Assembly (NCBI GenBank): GCA_965112735.1
Contig: OZ218960.1
Location: 2,604,001 to 2,668,000, forward strand
Direction: 5' to 3'
DNA from: Phaeosaccion multiseriatum
Taxonomy: Eukaryota; Protista; Ochrophyta, other classes
DNA length: 64,000 bases
Shown: one piece after another, positions 43,671 to 52,000 of the stretch
Layout of the letters: every line of letters begins with the position of its first letter
Numbering within the stretch: the first letter of the stretch is position 1
Notes under the pieces: model-generated
Told to the model about the DNA's origin: nothing
The model's database searches: none
What the model saw: the letters and a program-made list of their open reading frames with translations, nothing else
Position numbers and translations under genes: made by a program

Positions 43671-44610
43671 TTATGCCGTCGACTCCTTGAGGTAGGCGAT
43701 GAGGTTCTTCCTCTCGTCCACCTTCTTGATGCCTGCAAACACCATCTTGGTGCCCTTAATGTACTTCTTGGGGGCGAGCAGGTACTCGAACAGCGTGTCC
43801 TCCTCCCACAGGATGCCGCTCTTCTTGTTGGCAGTGGAGTAGGCGTAGCCCTCCTTGCTCCCGGCCATGCGGCCGAAGAGCCCGTTGAGGTTGGGCCCCT
43901 GCTTGTCGGATCCACCCTGTAGATGGAGGAAGAGGAAGGACGTAGTGCACACGGTGGTGTTGGGGTGGGCGGTGAGGCATGGAAGGTGATGAGAGAGGTA
44001 GAACGCAAGTGGGGATGAACCACTATCGGGCAGGGCTGTGCCTCAGTTCCGGGCTGGTCAATCGCAGCATCAGTCGAGCGTTGCGTCAAAGACGAGGCAG
44101 CGAGAGAGCACCCGCTGCACTGCCTGCCGGTCGGACTGAAAAAACCAGCGAACATGAACATGAAAGGCAGAGGAGCGGGAAAAACTCATTCGCGCTGCCG
44201 TGAGGTGAGGCCGCTTCTCCGCCATGCGTGGAAGCGTGGGTGAGGTCGGCGCCGAAGAGCTACACGCTTTCATCGTCCTGCCTTCCTCCCGCCCCTTTAC
44301 TAGGTGTTGCCTGCCTCCATCTGCCATCCACCGCGGTCTGAGTGGGCACGTCCGCTCCCCACTGTCCTTGCAAGGCATTGTCGCTTCCACCAACCGCGGC
44401 CAAGTAGAAGCAAGTAGGGAGGTCCTGGCTGGCAGCACGCGCCATTCTTTTTCACTGCCTAAAAAGGGTCCGCATGTTTCCAGCCTCTGCTGCGTCATCC
44501 CTGAAACTCGCGGGAATTTCCTCGCTCAGTCCGCTCTACTCACGCACCTTCTCCACAGTGTGGCACTGCGAGCACTTGGTCTTGAAGATCTTCGCTCCCT
44601 TGTCCGCCAT
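43671..44610 (-). CDS. CYC1: Mitochondrial cytochrome c
   Basis: Exons 44610-44548 ([21 protein letters not shown], CxxCH) and 43916-43671 ([16 protein letters not shown]...[14 protein letters not shown]). Confidence 0.97.
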
Positions 44611-44711
44611 CTTTGTCTGTAGGTCTCTCAACTAATAGTCCAAGAAGGTGCGGAGGGCTGTGAACAAGCAATGGCAGGCTCCGATCGAACGAGGGAGAAG
44701 AAACGTATTCA

Positions 44712-44756
44712 CAAAATCCCGGGGGTTACGTTTGTCAGGAAATTGACACTCGTACT
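44712..44756 (+). promoter_or_regulatory. Candidate promoter elements shared by the duplicated genes (second copy ~46486-46530)
   Basis: CAAAATCCCGGGGGT and ATTGACACTCGTACT are conserved, with almost the same spacing, ~70-115 bp upstream of both ATGs (44823 and 46601). The intervening and downstream UTR sequence has diverged. Confidence 0.55.
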
Positions 44757-44822
44757 CCCCACCCCTCCTTTTTATTTTTCCTTTTCCTCCTCTTCCATCA
44801 AGTCCCTCGTCTTTATAAGAAG

Positions 44823-45221
44823 ATGCGCGTGCTCCCCTTGTTGATCATCTTGGGATGCGCAGAGGGCTTTTGTCCGGCGACGCTGAGGCCCCGGACGGCG
44901 GCCTTGCATCGGTGCCGTGGGCCCAGTTCTCTGGCCAAAAGCACCAGCGCCGGCGGAGCTGCCACCATGGGAACTCGGCTTCACCTGGATATCCGGACGG
45001 AAAGGGAAGCGGTGGAGAAGGAGGAGCAAGAAATTAGGTGGGCTCTGCGCGGGTATGGTCCTTACTTGGGAGTGACGAATAAGGAGAACAGAGAGGAGCT
45101 GTTGATGCACCTCCAGGCCATCAGGGAGGAGAAGAGGCAGCTGCGAGAGTATGAGAGGGACGAGGACGCGAAGGAGAAGGACTTTGAAAGACAGAAGGAG
45201 CTGCTGCTCCTCCAGGCGTAG
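44823..45221 (+). CDS. Small chimeric ORF: duplicated bipartite plastid presequence fused to an unrelated charged coiled-coil peptide (new gene or pseudogene)
   Basis: The first ~55 codons (MRVLPLLIILGCAEG|FCPA...GTRLHL) are near-identical to the start of the 46601 gene. The remainder (DIRTEREAVEKEEQEIRWALRGYGPYLGVT...) is unrelated to that gene. Confidence 0.55.
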   Translation: MRVLPLLIILGCAEGFCPATLRPRTAALHRCRGPSSLAKSTSAGGAATMGTRLHLDIRTEREAVEKEEQEIRWALRGYGPYLGVTNKENREELLMHLQAIREEKRQLREYERDEDAKEKDFERQKELLLLQA

Positions 45222-45469
45222 GGACACCAGGAAAACGGAGGCAAGAGAAGAGAGGGGGGAAGGAGGTGAGGAGGAAGCGGGGGTGGGACGGGGAAGAGGG
45301 GGTACTAAGCGGCGACGGGAAGTATCAGGAGGAGTTGAATTTCGCCCGGTTGCTGGCCTCCCTCCCTCCTCCTGCAGCGCCGTCCCAGTTTGTGTGTGTG
45401 TCAGTTTCAGCTTGCTGCTTATGTCCGTCAGCTTTGCCTGGTTGGGGGCCAGCTTTACTTCTTGAGAGG

Positions 45470-45930
45470 GGTGATCTCTGAGCGGTGGCCGCACAGTGCT
45501 CCATGGGGAGCGTCTACATGGCAGCAGCGGAGGCATCCGGCCTGGAGCCTCCCTTACGGTCAACCCCTGATACACTATCGCCCACATTCTCGATAGCGCG
45601 CCGGCTGGCGCCGGCGATAGCGGATAGCGGATAGTGTATCAGGGGTTGATTACGGAGTCGGTCTTGCACGAGGACAAGCAACCAGGGGTGCATTCGGCTG
45701 GCGAATGGGGACGCGAGCTCGAAGCACACGCGACACACCGACGTCCGTTATCATTTCCTGCAGTACCACGTGCGAAAGGGGCGGGGATGTTTTCAGTACA
45801 TCAGCACTAAGGACCAGCTTGGGGACATCAGGACCAAGGCGTTGGCACCTCAGGTACACATCGGTCTGGCGGCGCATTTCCTTTTTCTGAATTGCCGACA
45901 AATGGTGGAGGACGACTCCCTGCCCATTAC
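45470..45930 (+). mobile_element. Degenerate Ty1/copia LTR-retrotransposon RNase H fragment
   Basis: Translation across indels gives VAAQCSMGSVYMAAAEA ... LHED(4-nt insertion)NQGCIRLANGDASSKHTRHTDVRYHFLQYHVRKG..FQYISTKDQLGDIRTKAL. This matches the copia consensus EAEYxA...EDNQ...KHIDVRYHF...QLADILTKAL. No LTRs or other pol domains seen. Confidence 0.82.
45560..45649. mobile_element. 90-bp MITE-like hairpin element, copy 1
   Basis: Perfect 20-bp terminal inverted repeats TCAACCCCTGATACACTATC (45560-45579) and GATAGTGTATCAGGGGTTGA (45630-45649). Flanking direct repeat TTACGG at 45554-45559 and 45650-45655. Interrupts the copia relic. Confidence 0.85.
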
Positions 45931-46090
45931 CTATCTGCTATCTGCTATCGCCGGCGCCAGCCGGCGTGCTATGGTCGCCAGCTGATAGCACTCGACCCCT
46001 GACACGCTATCGCCCACTTTCTCGATAGCGCGCTATCGGTCCCCGGGGATAGCGTGTCAGGGGTCGATCGATTAGCACGTCAGGGGTCGA
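45931..46090. mobile_element. Nested MITE-like elements: 76-bp copy 2 (45992-46067) inserted into the end of a truncated inverted copy 3
   Basis: Copy 2 has perfect 20-bp TIRs TCGACCCCTGACACGCTATC / GATAGCGTGTCAGGGGTCGA. TAGCAC is repeated at 45986-45991 and 46073-46078. 45931-45972 is the reverse complement of the copy-1 interior, and a further GTCAGGGGTCGA end lies at 46079-46090. Confidence 0.72.
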
Positions 46091-46600
46091 GCTAGAGGCA
46101 GCAAGCCATCTTGTATTCCGGCGGCGGCGTTGTCCCTAAGCTCCCGAGTCTATGCCTCACTGTAGAACAGATTTAATACACCTATTTCATCAAGTTTTGC
46201 GCACCGCGCGTGAGGGCTTTGCTTCACCTTCCCTCCTTCCCCTTTCCTCTTTGATCCTCTGTCCCTTCTTCACCGGCAGGGCAGGCACTCTCCTTTCGAC
46301 TCCTTGAGCCGTGCCTCGTGCCTCCCCGGCCTCCTCCTCCTCCTCCTCCTCCTCCTCCTCCTCCTCCTCCTCCTCCTCCACCTTCAATATGCTCCCTGTC
46401 TCCAAAACTATTTTTTTTTGCCTCAGAAGAGGATGCAGAGAAAAAGAGGAAGAGAAAAAAAGAAATTGGACCCAGAAACCCTCAGCAAAATCCCGGGGGG
46501 TCCATTTGCGCAGCTGATTGACACTCGTACTGCTACAACCTCCCCTTCATGCGCCTAGAAACAGGCCGCCTGGCCGCGAGGGAACACGATCAGGGAACAG

Positions 46601-49030
46601 ATGCGCGTGCTCCCCTTGCTGATCACCTTGGGATGCGCAGAGGGCTTTTGTCCGGCGACGCTTCGGCCCCGGACGGCGGCCTTGCATCAGTGCCGTGGGC
46701 CCAGTTCTCTGGCCAAAAGGACCAGCCCCGGCGGAGGCTGCCACCATGATAGCAGAAGGCAACGGGGTCGTGTGGTGGGCACTCGGCTGCACCTGGTAGA
46801 TGGCTTGTCCGAGCTGGGCGCGCTGCTGTCCTCGCCCCTTGCACACCATGATTGGTTGCTGCTGTTGGCCGGCGCGGACGTAAGCGACGGCGTGGGGCAA
46901 GCGGTGGCCGGGGTGCAGAGCTTGGCAGAGGCGGTGGGCGACTTGGGCCAATTGGGAGACCACGTGTCGGGCTTCGTAGACTCGGTGGGGGGCGGCTTGG
47001 ATCACTTGGGAGACCACGTCTCGAGGCTGAGCGGGGAGCACGGTGTGGGAGACTTGGTGAGCCAACACTTGGATCAGGTTGGAGACCACGTGTCGAGGTT
47101 TGCAGGGTCTATTACATTGTCGGACGCGGATATCCTTGACGGAGCAACGGCGGCGGTCGACCATGGGGCGGAGGTGTCACATCATTCTGTGGAAGCAGTG
47201 AAGGAGGTGGTCAGTAGTCCAGCGGTGGAGGCAGTGAAGGAGGTGGCAGTCAGTCATCCAGTGGCGGAGGCAGCGGCCAGCCACCCAGTGGCGGAGGTAG
47301 CAAGTCACGCAGGGGAGGCAGTGAAGGAGGCGGCAAAGGAAACAGAAGTAGTTAAGGAGGTAGTGAAGGAGACTGTCAAGGAGGCAGCAAAGGTGGAAGG
47401 CGGAGGGGAAGTAGTTAAGGAAGCAGTGAAGGAAGCGGCAAAGGCGGAAAGCGAAGTAGTTAAGGAAGCGGTGAAGGAAGTAGTAAAGGAGGCTTCGAAA
47501 GAAGGTGGAGGAGAAGTGGTGAAGGAAGCAGTAAAGGAGGCAGTGAAGGAGGTTGCGAAAGAAGGAGGAGGAGAAGCAGTAAAGGAGGCTGTGAAGCCGG
47601 CGGCAGAAGCCGTTGTCAAGGAGGCCACCAAGCCCGTGACCAGTGCCGCAGTGGAGATCAAGAGCGCCGTGCAGGTGAGCCGAGAGTCGCGCACACGCAT
47701 GAGAGCCTCTCCTTCGCACGTGTTGAAATCAAACGGCAGAAGGAAGGAAGGAAGGAAGGAAGGAGGGGATGGATTCCTCACATATTGTCGGTGCTGTTTT
47801 GCCTGCCTCTCCTGTCTCTTTGACACCTGCTGTCCTGTCCTGGCATTGTGTACTGTGCCTTCTTCCTTTTGCCTCTTCCGTACGCAGCCACTGAAAGAAG
47901 TCGCCGTGAGCGGAGGCGGTGTGGACGCTGGGGCAGCGAAGGGAGCGGTGAAGGGAGCGGCATCACTAGGCAGGCAGCCCGGTGCTGCGAGCGCCTTCAC
48001 CAAGGACCCAGCAACACGGGCGCAAGAAGCAGCACAGCGGGCCAAAGAGATAGGGCAGGTCAAGGAGCGACTTGACGGTCAAGTGAAGGAGTTGTCCACA
48101 ACTGTCAAGCAGGCGGCAGGGCAGGCCAAGGAGGTGAAAGGGCAGGTGAAGGAGACCGTGACGAAGGTGGCAGGGACAGCCAAAGAGGTGTCGGGGCAGG
48201 CAGCAGTAGCGAGCCAGCAGGCGGCAGTAGGTGTCAAGGAGCTACAAGAACAACTCCATCAGGTGGGAGGGAGGGAGGGAGGGTGGGGATGCGAAGACTC
48301 AAGCTGTGCATGTGTGTATGTTCCCGAGCTGTCCTTGTGTATGTATGTACTTCTACGTATGTATGTATGTATGTATGTATGTATGTCGCGCGTGCTACAT
48401 TTTGGGGGCGAAATGATGGAGAGGGTTTTTTTCTGTTGAGTCTCTTCCCTTGGCTGAACAAGCGAGACCCTCCGTGGGGCGGTAACCCACCCCGGGTACA
48501 ACATGTCTCCCAGCACCCCACCCACCTACTTACTTGCCCACCCATCCTTCTGACACCCATCCACACTCGGCACATCCCCCTTCCCTCCTCCTCATCGTCC
48601 GTCTAACTTCCTACCTCCCCCCCCCCCTCTTGTCCTGACACCATCTCTACCTCTCATCAGGCCGTGTTAACACTGCAGAAGATCTTCCCTCCCAGGACGG
48701 TCTTAAACTTCGAGAATCTCGCAGTGCTTCCCTTCTGGATGGGGGTCATCTTCAGGCCCCAGTCCCGGATCGTGAACAAAGTCGTGGATAGCTACTGTTT
48801 CGTCGTAGGTACGGGCGGAGGGAGAGAGAGAGAGAGCGAGGGGGTGGGGAGGGGAGGGGAGGGACGGCAATCGAAGCGCGGGCCCTTCCCCGTCTTAGGT
48901 ACTATATTGGTTGACTTTAACCCACCCTCCCCCTTTTGGTAATCTTGAACTCATCCCTCGCCCGTCTGTACTTTCCTTCCTCCCCCCTCCCCCCCTCCCT
49001 CCCTCTCTTGCAACATCTTGCACCGAACGG

Positions 49031-49065
<35 letters not shown>

Positions 49066-52000
49066 GCAGTGACGGGTGCCATCTACCTATGGCTGTCCTA
49101 TGAGGCTTTACAAAACCCCATCAGGTCCGTCGATCAGAGCTCACATGCATGATCATCATCATCATCATCATCATCATCCTTGTCTTGGGCTGTGTTGTTC
49201 GATCTCTCAATTGTTTCATCAATCATTGGGTCAATCATCGCCCTCATAGTGTACCGAAGCCCCACCCCTCTCTACGCGAAACTGATGCCCCTTCCCTTTC
49301 CCCCTCCTCCCCTCCCCCTCCCCATCCCCCTTCCTCCCTCCCTCTCCTCCCTCCTCACCCGCCGCCAGTGTGCAAGGTTTCTACAGCGGTCTGGGCATGA
49401 TGAACTTTGATGGCCTCACTAAAGGCTTTACTCAAGAGGTCTCCGTGGCTACTGTGTGGAGCCACTGTGTCGCACAGGTACGTACGTACATACGTGTGTA
49501 CGCAATCTTATGATACAAAATCAGACGTTTGCATCATTATAAGCCCAGTTAGTCCGAGGTGACACCTGACACCCAATGCCCCCGTCCCCCGGGGTTCTCG
49601 CCTCGAGGGGTATAACCCGAGGGGGGGGGCTCGTAGGAGTAGGAAAGGCTGCTGACTTGCCGGCTGTGCGGCCATCTCTGTCTGGCCTGCCCCTGCCTGT
49701 CCTGTTTGCTGTGGCCTGTCGAGAGGCAAATAGACGAGACATGTATGTGTGTCAGTGTTCAGTTCATGTGACCTTAGCAATGATATCGAGCACATGAATG
49801 GATTCGATAAAAGCTTTTGTTAGTGACCTCTGATGACCTGTTGGTTGTTTTTTCCATCTGTTGGGTCTGACGTCAGCTTGTGTAGTCCGTCGTCCGTCTT
49901 CGTCTTCCCTTCCTCTTGTGTCCTGGCACTCATTTTTTCTCCCTCTTTTTTTTCTTTCCCTCCTTTCCTCTTGTGTACTCTATGTACATATACACATATA
50001 TATATACATATTATATATGTATCATTGTATATGTCATGATATATACATACATATATATATACATCAGGACCTGTTGGCCGGGACGTGGATCTTCCGGGAC
50101 GCAAGGAAGAAGGGTATCTGGTCGGGCCACTCCCTCCTCGCAACGCTCCTCTTTGGGCCTCTTGGAGTACTCAGTCATTTTGCGACACGTGCCATTTGGC
50201 CCTATTTGGACCGGTGAGTGCGTGTGCGTGTGCGTGTGCGTGCCTGAGTGCGTGTACGTGCGTGCGTGCGAGCGTGCGTGCGAGCGTGCGTGCGTGCGTG
50301 CGTGCGTCTGCGTGCGCGTTGCGACTGGCCTTCTGCAGAGGGGGGCAAGCGCGGGACGGAGGAGGAGGAGGAGGAGGAGAAGTAGGATTCTTATTATAGC
50401 ATGTTGGTCAGGAGGAGTTTTAGTTTTATGGTGTAGGAGGAGGGAGGAGGAGGAGGAGGAGTTTTATAGTAGGAGGAGGAGGGAGGAAGAGGAGTTTTAC
50501 TAGAGTAGTAGGAGGAGCCCCTTATATTAGACTATACGTACAGCTTTTGCTCTTGGCTTTGCTCCTCCGCAAAGCTTTGGCATTTGCTGCGACAATACGT
50601 ATCACTCTTCATAGAATATAAAAGCGTTTTAACAAGGGGCGGAGCATGGTTAGAGCCTGCCTTTTCTTCTACTTGCCGGCCCGGCTTTGACTACCCATAC
50701 GCTTTGCCTGCCTGTGTGCCTGCCCGTGTGCCTGCCTGCCTTCCCCTGCCTGTCTGGCTTTCTGCTTGCCTGCCTGCGGTTTGGTACGGCGTGTCTGGGG
50801 GGGGGGGGGAGACGGAGAGGCTGCTATTTTTTCGTTCTTTCTTTCTTTCTTTCTTGTCTTCCACCTCTCTGCGCTACGTTGCGCTGATCATCTCCTCTGC
50901 CCATCTGCAAACAAGGGGAACGCAACTCCCCCCGTCGCCAGTCGCTACTCCTGCACTCATGTCACGTACCACCAACTCCTCCATCCCCCCCCCCCCCTCT
51001 CTCTCTCTCGTGCCCCCCAAAGAAAGGGGCTAGTGAATCGCAGCGGAGGCTCTTCAACATGGATGGACATGTCCAATGGCTTCACTAGCTGGGGGTCAGG
51101 GGGTTGGTCATCGCCCTCTCCTTCGCCCTCCTCCAAGTCGTCGTCGGGTGGGGTGTTCGGCTGGGGATCACCATCACCCTCAAAGTCATCATCCTCCAAG
51201 TCCAAATCATCATCGTCAAGCAACAGCTCGTCATCAAGCTCCAAGGACAAGGGGAAGGACAAGGACAAGGGGAAGGACAAGGACAAGGGGAAGGACAAAG
51301 GGAAGGACAAGGGGAAGGACAAAGGGAAGGACAAGGGGAAGGATAAGGGGAAGGCACCCTCACCATCACCTTCATCATCATCGTCATCATCATCAACGTC
51401 CTCACCAATTCCGATTCCGGAGGGAAAGTGGGGAGTTCCCTCGCCGTCCGTTTCGGAGCAATGGGGCCCCCCTGCACCAATCTACTCGGGCGGTTCATGG
51501 CCCCCGCCGGCGCCAGGATGGGCCTCACCCACACCCACCCCTTGGCCCGCACCTGCAGCCGGTTGGGCATCCCCGTCGTCCACTTCCACCCCCTCCAGCG
51601 TCACCATCTTACCGTCGTCGGCTCCCTCGGCGGCCCCGGTCACTAAATCCCCCCCTTCACCCTCGAAACCATCCTCCTCCTCATCCTCAAAACCTTCATC
51701 CTCCTCCTCCTCCTCCTCCTCCTCCTCAAAACCATCCTCCTCCTCCTCCTCATCCTCAAAACCGTCATCCTCCTCCTCCTCGAAACCCTCTCCATCACCC
51801 TCCAAAACACCATCGAAATCACCCTCACCATCCCCGTCACCGTCAAAACCACCATCTCCCTCCTACGCCAAGGGTACGGTCGCACCCAAGGGGGAGTCCA
51901 AGTCTTTGGCCAAACCCTCACCCTCACCCGCAGCACCCACCCCCGCACCCAACTACGCAAGGGGGGGCTGGCAGTCGGGAGGACCTACGCTCGACAGGAG

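Follow-up and report, generated by a model that had tools for sequence, protein, structure and literature searches.

A duplicated plastid-type leader fused in frame to a broken ankyrin-family fragment in Phaeosaccion multiseriatum: probably a by-product of local rearrangement

When the leader of a plastid gene is copied in front of foreign coding sequence, has a new plastid-targeted gene been born, or is the product a chimera without a future? The question is raised by a locus of Phaeosaccion multiseriatum (assembly GCA_965112735.1), located in a 64,000-nucleotide (nt) stretch of contig OZ218960.1. This stretch is referred to as the window, and coordinates are positions within it. The 5' end of an ABA4-like gene (46601 onward) occurs a second time upstream, where it heads an open reading frame (ORF) of 132 amino acids on the plus strand (ORF A, 44823-45221). 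The left copy, belonging to ORF A, is termed copy A and the right copy, heading the ABA4-like gene, copy B. The original prediction, a note made from the sequence before this analysis, proposed the birth of a plastid-targeted gene. Its core, the duplication of an upstream block plus leader and their fusion in frame to foreign coding sequence, was found to be correct; the cargo, in contrast, is a truncated and frameshifted piece of an ankyrin-repeat gene without its ankyrin domain. We consider ORF A to be probably a chimeric by-product of local rearrangement, which is either decaying or at most a neutral proto-gene.

The extent of the duplication was determined in two ways. A repeat finder reported a direct repeat of 138 nt with 95% identity and an offset of 1778 nt (44821-44958 and 46599-46736), and a gapped local alignment was collinear over 44712-44969 and 46486-46748. 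Both agree with the original prediction, by which the ABA4-like gene has a duplicate of its upstream motifs and initial 55-65 codons about 1.8 kilobases upstream. Beyond a gap of 29 nt, another 21 nt align with 90% identity (44968-44988 and 46776-46796), and homology stops in both copies at CACCTGG (44988 and 46796), in the codons of GTRLHL, exactly where its end had been placed. Three zones of identity were distinguished. An upstream block of 46 nt, a candidate promoter or 5' untranslated region (UTR) element on the plus strand (44712-44757 in copy A, 46486-46531 in copy B), is about 83% identical. About 65 nt before the ATG, pyrimidine-rich in copy A (44758-44820, plus strand; 46532-46598 in copy B), are of near-equal length in the two copies, yet cannot be aligned. 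The leader itself, which comprises 55 codons in copy A (44823-44987) and in copy B extends to codon 65 of exon 1 (46601-46796; both plus strand), is 95% identical. In the 67-Mb genome, leader-coding DNA is present only in copies A and B. Exact matches to two words of the upstream block, one 14-mer and one 15-mer, are confined to the same two loci, hence, the block belongs to the duplication, and its interpretation as a common promoter motif was ruled out.

Unitigs of four short-read DNA runs from one sample were used to check the assembly. A collapsed or mis-joined repeat would be in line with the unitig breaks which fall within the shared segment (44855-44878 and 46633-46656), but such breaks are expected from two real copies with common k-mers. 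In all four runs, the unitigs linked either copy to the unique sequence which flanks it, free of differences and at the depth of neighbouring single-copy DNA. Since the unitigs support both copies, the arrangement is not attributed to an assembly error; an artefact is extremely unlikely.

The 77 codons following the leader (44988-45218, plus strand), referred to as the passenger, had been described as an unrelated charged helix resembling modules of Crinkler-like families. A helical structure is indeed predicted by AlphaFold (helix 2-21, loop, helix 32-76; predicted local distance difference test score 83). However, the passenger is not an orphan: it is the N-terminal coiled-coil module (N-module) of an ankyrin-repeat family whose proteins have about 500 amino acids and which is present in this genome in 37 or more copies. 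It matches at least 36 other genomic places, 25 of which are in open frames of 426-592 amino acids; the N-module copies in short open frames (< 300 amino acids; 11 of 36) show that fragments of the family are common. Intact members start with M-E-D-I-Q or similar and contain the helical module and a linker; ankyrin repeats (Pfam Ank_4) make up part of their C-terminal half. Compared to eight intact paralogues, the passenger is 51-68% identical, contains the motif ELLMHLQ..REEK and retains 19 of the 24 residues which are invariant among them, a share not below that of the intact member which diverges most. Pfam scans of ORF A and of intact family members gave no match to a Crinkler header or LFLAK-type family at E ≤ 0.1 and the relatives of the family are ankyrin proteins, thus, a Crinkler-like passenger was ruled out.

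Outside this genome, the only relatives of the family, with about 30% identity across the C-terminal half, are ankyrin proteins from Mollivirus, Chloropicon, Balamuthia and metagenomes. A profile of the N-module gave two weak matches among 1.84 billion representative proteins, which indicates that the module is almost lineage-specific. The best outside relative of the N-module is a 135-amino-acid ORF on a Logan contig of SRR23274242 (L039, 867-1274; E = 5.9e-8). An exact look-up of ORF A and of one family member in the protein collection returned neither sequence. As further observations on the family, a partial copy in opposite orientation and in two frames is located on contig 7 (L010:26-1110), directly upstream of the intact family member to which the passenger is closest. 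The same contig contains C-terminal fragments of light-harvesting complex (LHC) genes (PF00504 positions 114-162; G000:C7:3470692-3470835 and 3484858-3485001) beside inverted N-module copies.

At the junction, the family genes read TTCCAG, A or C, and then ATG-GAG-GAC-ATA-CAG, where ORF A reads CAC-CTG-GAT-ATC-CGG. The fusion is in frame, and the family-derived part begins at family codon 3, two codons past the family ATG. Between one and three nt at the junction are ambiguous between the two sources (microhomology). The passenger ends at a TAG (45219-45221, plus strand), which the original prediction suspected to be premature. This was borne out: the proteins of the family extend about 380 residues further, and family homology continues past the stop in a shifted frame. 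The DNA offset to the nearest paralogue shifts by 11 nt between 45213 and 45259 (net 11 nt missing), and the linker motif reappears in another frame at 45259-45387 (plus strand). The ankyrin half, i.e., the C-terminal 330 amino acids of the family, has no homology anywhere in 44000-47000. Accordingly built, ORF A has neither ankyrin repeats nor an open frame of about 480-520 amino acids as is typical for the family. Premature stop, frameshift and missing ankyrin domain suggest that ORF A is probably a decaying chimera or at most a neutral proto-gene, and not an established plastid protein. Two other ORFs of the region, a minus-strand ORF of 271 amino acids (44772-45587), considered as an antisense gene, and a shifted-frame ORF (45151-45465), were not taken as genes, both being without a Pfam match.

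For a by-product of local rearrangement, the following course is proposed. A segment X of about 290 nt, which runs from the upstream block of 46 nt through the 5' UTR to codon 55-65 of the ABA4-like gene, would have been duplicated locally, giving the layout X-insert-X. The left X has kept the ancestral neighbour, a cytochrome c gene, and the right X still heads the intact ABA4-like gene. The insert begins with the 5' fragment of an ankyrin-family gene, joined via the microhomology of 1-3 nt. Template switching during replication, or break repair with filler DNA, may be the source of this layout, since X-insert-X, microhomology and a foreign templated piece fit either process. Transposon insertions would have followed after the rearrangement. 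If ORF A is transcribed, the leader of the pre-protein would direct it to the endoplasmic reticulum and on toward the plastid, together with a helical fragment of 77 amino acids.

The junction also bears on an RNA-mediated origin, in which a chimeric transcript, spliced from a cryptic donor after CACCTG to an acceptor inside the family exon, would have been reverse-transcribed and inserted upstream of the parent. The homology of copy B ends at CTG/GTAGAT, which is donor-like, the family genes have GGAG where the retained part starts and, ahead of the ATG, TTCCAG, which is acceptor-like, and copia-type reverse transcriptases are encoded in the genome. However, the upstream block is duplicated too, no poly(A) tract or target-site duplication was seen after the fragment, and exon 1 of the parent is coding without a break through this point. 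The obvious family acceptor would keep ATG-GAG, which is absent in ORF A, and landing beside the parent would be a coincidence. This origin is considered very unlikely.

Whether copy A is under constraint was judged from length differences and substitutions. Copy A is shorter than copy B by 1 nt and by 29 nt; the two gaps are separated by 11 nt present in both copies, and the reading frame is unchanged. The original prediction took these differences for deletions in copy A which together restore the frame. The differences are real and the frame is preserved, but they may have arisen in the parent. A second copy of the 29-nt segment was not found within the window, hence, there is no tandem-duplication signature which would polarise the length difference. 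As frame-keeping indels may equally stem from a parent under selection for its frame, they are no evidence of constraint on copy A. A separate effect of the 1-nt difference is that an ATG of copy A (GCCACCATGG context, 44964-44973) is placed in frame, seven codons before the junction; a start at this ATG would yield a leaderless product beginning near the start of the family proteins.

The original prediction further counted 5 synonymous and 4 non-synonymous substitutions and saw a hint of purifying selection. The count was reproduced over 51 comparable codons. The corresponding synonymous divergence (dS) is 0.127 and the non-synonymous divergence (dN) 0.037; their ratio omega of 0.29 is not significant (Fisher p = 0.12) and stems from a comparison of two sequences, which does not assign changes to a branch. 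For a neutral copy A and a parent with an omega of 0-0.3, 6-8 non-synonymous differences are expected and 4 were observed (P = 0.08-0.23). An omega of 0.29 fits a neutral copy A paired with a constrained parent. The hint of purifying selection is not supported, as parent constraint alone can account for it.

The features of the leader were compared between the two copies. Both have a hydrophobic core of 10 residues, A at -3, G at -1 and F16 at +1 (AEG/F, the slash marking the site). The putative signal peptide has 15 amino acids, and the mean Kyte-Doolittle value of core residues 3-12, a crude measure, is 2.9 for copy A and 2.4 for copy B. The subsequent transit-peptide-like stretch, which is basic, rich in S and T and nearly devoid of acidic residues, has 40 amino acids in copy A (6 K+R, 0 D+E, 9 S+T) and 50 in copy B (10 K+R, 1 D+E). 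An ASAFAP-type motif of ochrophyte plastid leaders, with F, W, Y or L at +1, has been described (PMC4329603), and LHC genes of the same genome carry the classical site GGASAF/MAP; as these genes use an ASAF/M-type site, F at +1 is meaningful in this genome. By such crude sequence measures, both copies look like a bipartite plastid leader, and the claim that this type of leader is retained in the duplicate (signal-peptide core, A-x-G/F, basic acid-free stretch) is supported. Concerning the LHC genes themselves, the open frames of three tandem genes (L023, L024 and L025; G000:C15:1.68-1.70 Mb) begin within the signal peptide, before GGASAF/MAP, so that an intron probably splits their leader-coding region.

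These features are part of the case for a new, expressed gene under selection, in which promoter block and leader would carry the 77-amino-acid coiled-coil module to the plastid or to a compartment of the secretory route. Much of this case at the same time weighs against a decaying by-product. The ORF of 396 nt (132 codons) remains open, although nearby non-coding sequence has many indels, and the two length differences total 30 nt, preserving the frame. Copy A retains its leader features intact, i.e., the signal-peptide core, the A-x-G/F site and the acid-free basic stretch, and its F at +1 matches the ASAF/M-type site of the LHC genes. The passenger keeps most of the family-invariant residues, within the range of intact members, and its helical fold is predicted with confidence. 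In favour of a gene, the upstream block has been conserved and is confined to the two loci, and the pairwise dN/dS is 0.29. Two further points weigh against a by-product. Since the upstream block is kept and ORF A shares its divergent promoter region with a housekeeping gene, transcription is plausible, and chance does not readily explain why the fusion point is so close to the family start codon.

Against a selected gene stand the lost ankyrin domain and the premature stop followed by a frameshift, a dN/dS which is not significant and is accounted for by parent constraint, and indels which are possibly those of the parent copy. In addition, a word-based search of 5.8 billion proteins with a length window of 73-231 amino acids, which makes a blank weak, returned no homologue of the 132-amino-acid chimera. 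The same type of search with residues 1-200 of the parent gave no match in a length window of 337-1071 amino acids, which again is a weak blank. On balance, a new gene maintained by selection is considered unlikely. Similarly, it is doubtful that ORF A would prove to be a live intermediate of leader recruitment, transcribed from the upstream block and translated, whose leader brings the coiled-coil head to the plastid or to the periplastid space.

Two observations are left unexplained by a chimeric by-product: why the captured piece starts near the family ATG, and why 65 nt of the 5' UTR are wholly different between similar flanks, which could be due to a replaced patch or to conversion. In the latter case, the duplication would be old, the similarity of the leaders would result from recent gene conversion by the parent, and the unalignable 5' UTR would represent saturation. 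The sharply uneven identity, which changes from 83% to unalignable over equal length and then to 95%, is in favour of such a history. So is the family fragment, whose DNA is far from the extant paralogues (at best 87% identity over 128 nt, elsewhere 72-76%) and whose downstream part is heavily decayed. Conversely, the dS of 0.127 is near the value of about 17% by which the non-coding block diverges, in line with one moderately young event without conversion, and the patch which cannot be aligned consists in copy A of low-complexity pyrimidine sequence, which slippage could have replaced. An old duplication overwritten by conversion, under which the similarity of the leaders would be uninformative on the age or function of copy A, is held to be improbable. 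A chimeric by-product of one local rearrangement remains the preferred interpretation.

The DNA between the copies is consistent in composition with the original prediction, which placed a copia relic and miniature inverted-repeat transposable elements (MITEs) there. Downstream of the displaced linker, 45388-45559 is unique sequence, single in the genome and without family homology, from which onward the ankyrin-coding part is absent. Transposon debris of very high read depth follows at 45560-46067, with MITE-like hairpins (45560-45649 and 45931-46067, the latter including a hairpin at 45992-46067) around the tail of a copia-type pol. This relic (about 45701-45853) corresponds to the C-terminal tail of the pol and is matched at 35 or more places in the genome; in an intact relative, RVT_2 was identified (E = 4.8e-41). 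A unique spacer, again single in the genome, extends over 46068-46485 and includes a (CCT)n microsatellite at 46321-46380. On either side of the transposon block, the sequence (45370-45562 and 46068-46480) occurs only once in the genome and was not recognisable as a captured fragment.

The parent, the ABA4-like gene (46601-50213, plus strand), was assigned the exons 46601-47674, 47888-48262, 48661-48808, 49070-49124, 49369-49477 and 50068-50213 plus a short last exon, which are phase-consistent, have GT/CAG borders and, translated singly, are free of stops. PF14108 (ABA4-like) matches at 48700-48807 and 50044-50178, i.e., the domain is encoded in exons 3-6, and exon 48661-48808, which opens it, is without a start codon of its own. 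Exon 1 has 1074 nt, and the duplicated 196 nt end inside this exon, not at an intron. ORF A gave no PF14108 match in a Pfam scan, and only the leader is common to ORF A and the ABA4-like gene. In the parent, about 420 residues of in-frame repeats (46797-48262) separate the leader from the ABA4-like domain, including LGDHVS-type units, of which there are three (46924-47098), and numerous KEAVKE-type units spaced by multiples of 3. A leader plus such repeats is an unusual architecture for this family of small membrane proteins. Intron 1 (47675-47887) has 213 nt and is in frame and stop-free, giving a read-through ORF of 612 amino acids; its retention would therefore leave the frame open.

On the other side of ORF A, a cytochrome c gene is encoded on the minus strand. 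Its first coding exon of 20 codons (44553-44612) was read from the sequence, exon 2 (43671-43952) matches Pfam Cytochrom_C, and the intron has about 600 nt. A distance of 210 nt separates the ATG of this gene from that of ORF A, and the divergent promoter region is common to both.

What is assumed about the gain of two-part leaders for complex plastids comes mostly from cases which are old and completed. At this locus, the raw material of such a gain is visible, with parent and copy adjacent and the junction defined, and the captured piece is already broken, which is the usual fate of such events. If ORF A is transcribed, it offers a natural test of whether 55 leader codons suffice for import; otherwise, it illustrates, as a dated case, the frequency with which leader fusions fail.

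Three known systems are suited for comparison. The first is the expanded ankyrin-repeat families of this genome, giant viruses and protists. The passenger is homologous to the N-module of one such family; unlike the members of these families, ORF A is without an ankyrin repeat, and its N-module is nearly lineage-specific. The second is presequence acquisition, for which cytochrome c1 is reportedly an example (Long et al. in 1996) and diatom presequences are said to be another (Kilian and Kroth in 2004). The locus is similar in that the leader of a plastid gene has been copied in frame before an unrelated coding sequence and the parent has kept its own. That organelle presequences are gained from already targeted genes by duplication or exon shuffling is an established idea (PMC3017844, PMC7456531, where both examples are cited). 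In contrast to such cases, the break is within a long first exon instead of at an intron, an upstream piece was co-copied, and the recipient is a truncated, frameshifted fragment.

The third comparison is with young chimeric genes of the jingwei type, which arise by partial duplication and fusion, and with filler-DNA insertions. As in these, a partial 5' duplicate is fused to part of another gene with 1-3 nt of microhomology, and, as in filler-DNA or template-switch insertions, the parent lies alongside in the layout X-insert-X. Unlike the jingwei type, the captured part is without its functional domain. Measured against these systems, the locus represents leader spread by a known route, caught as a dated intermediate which is probably failing.

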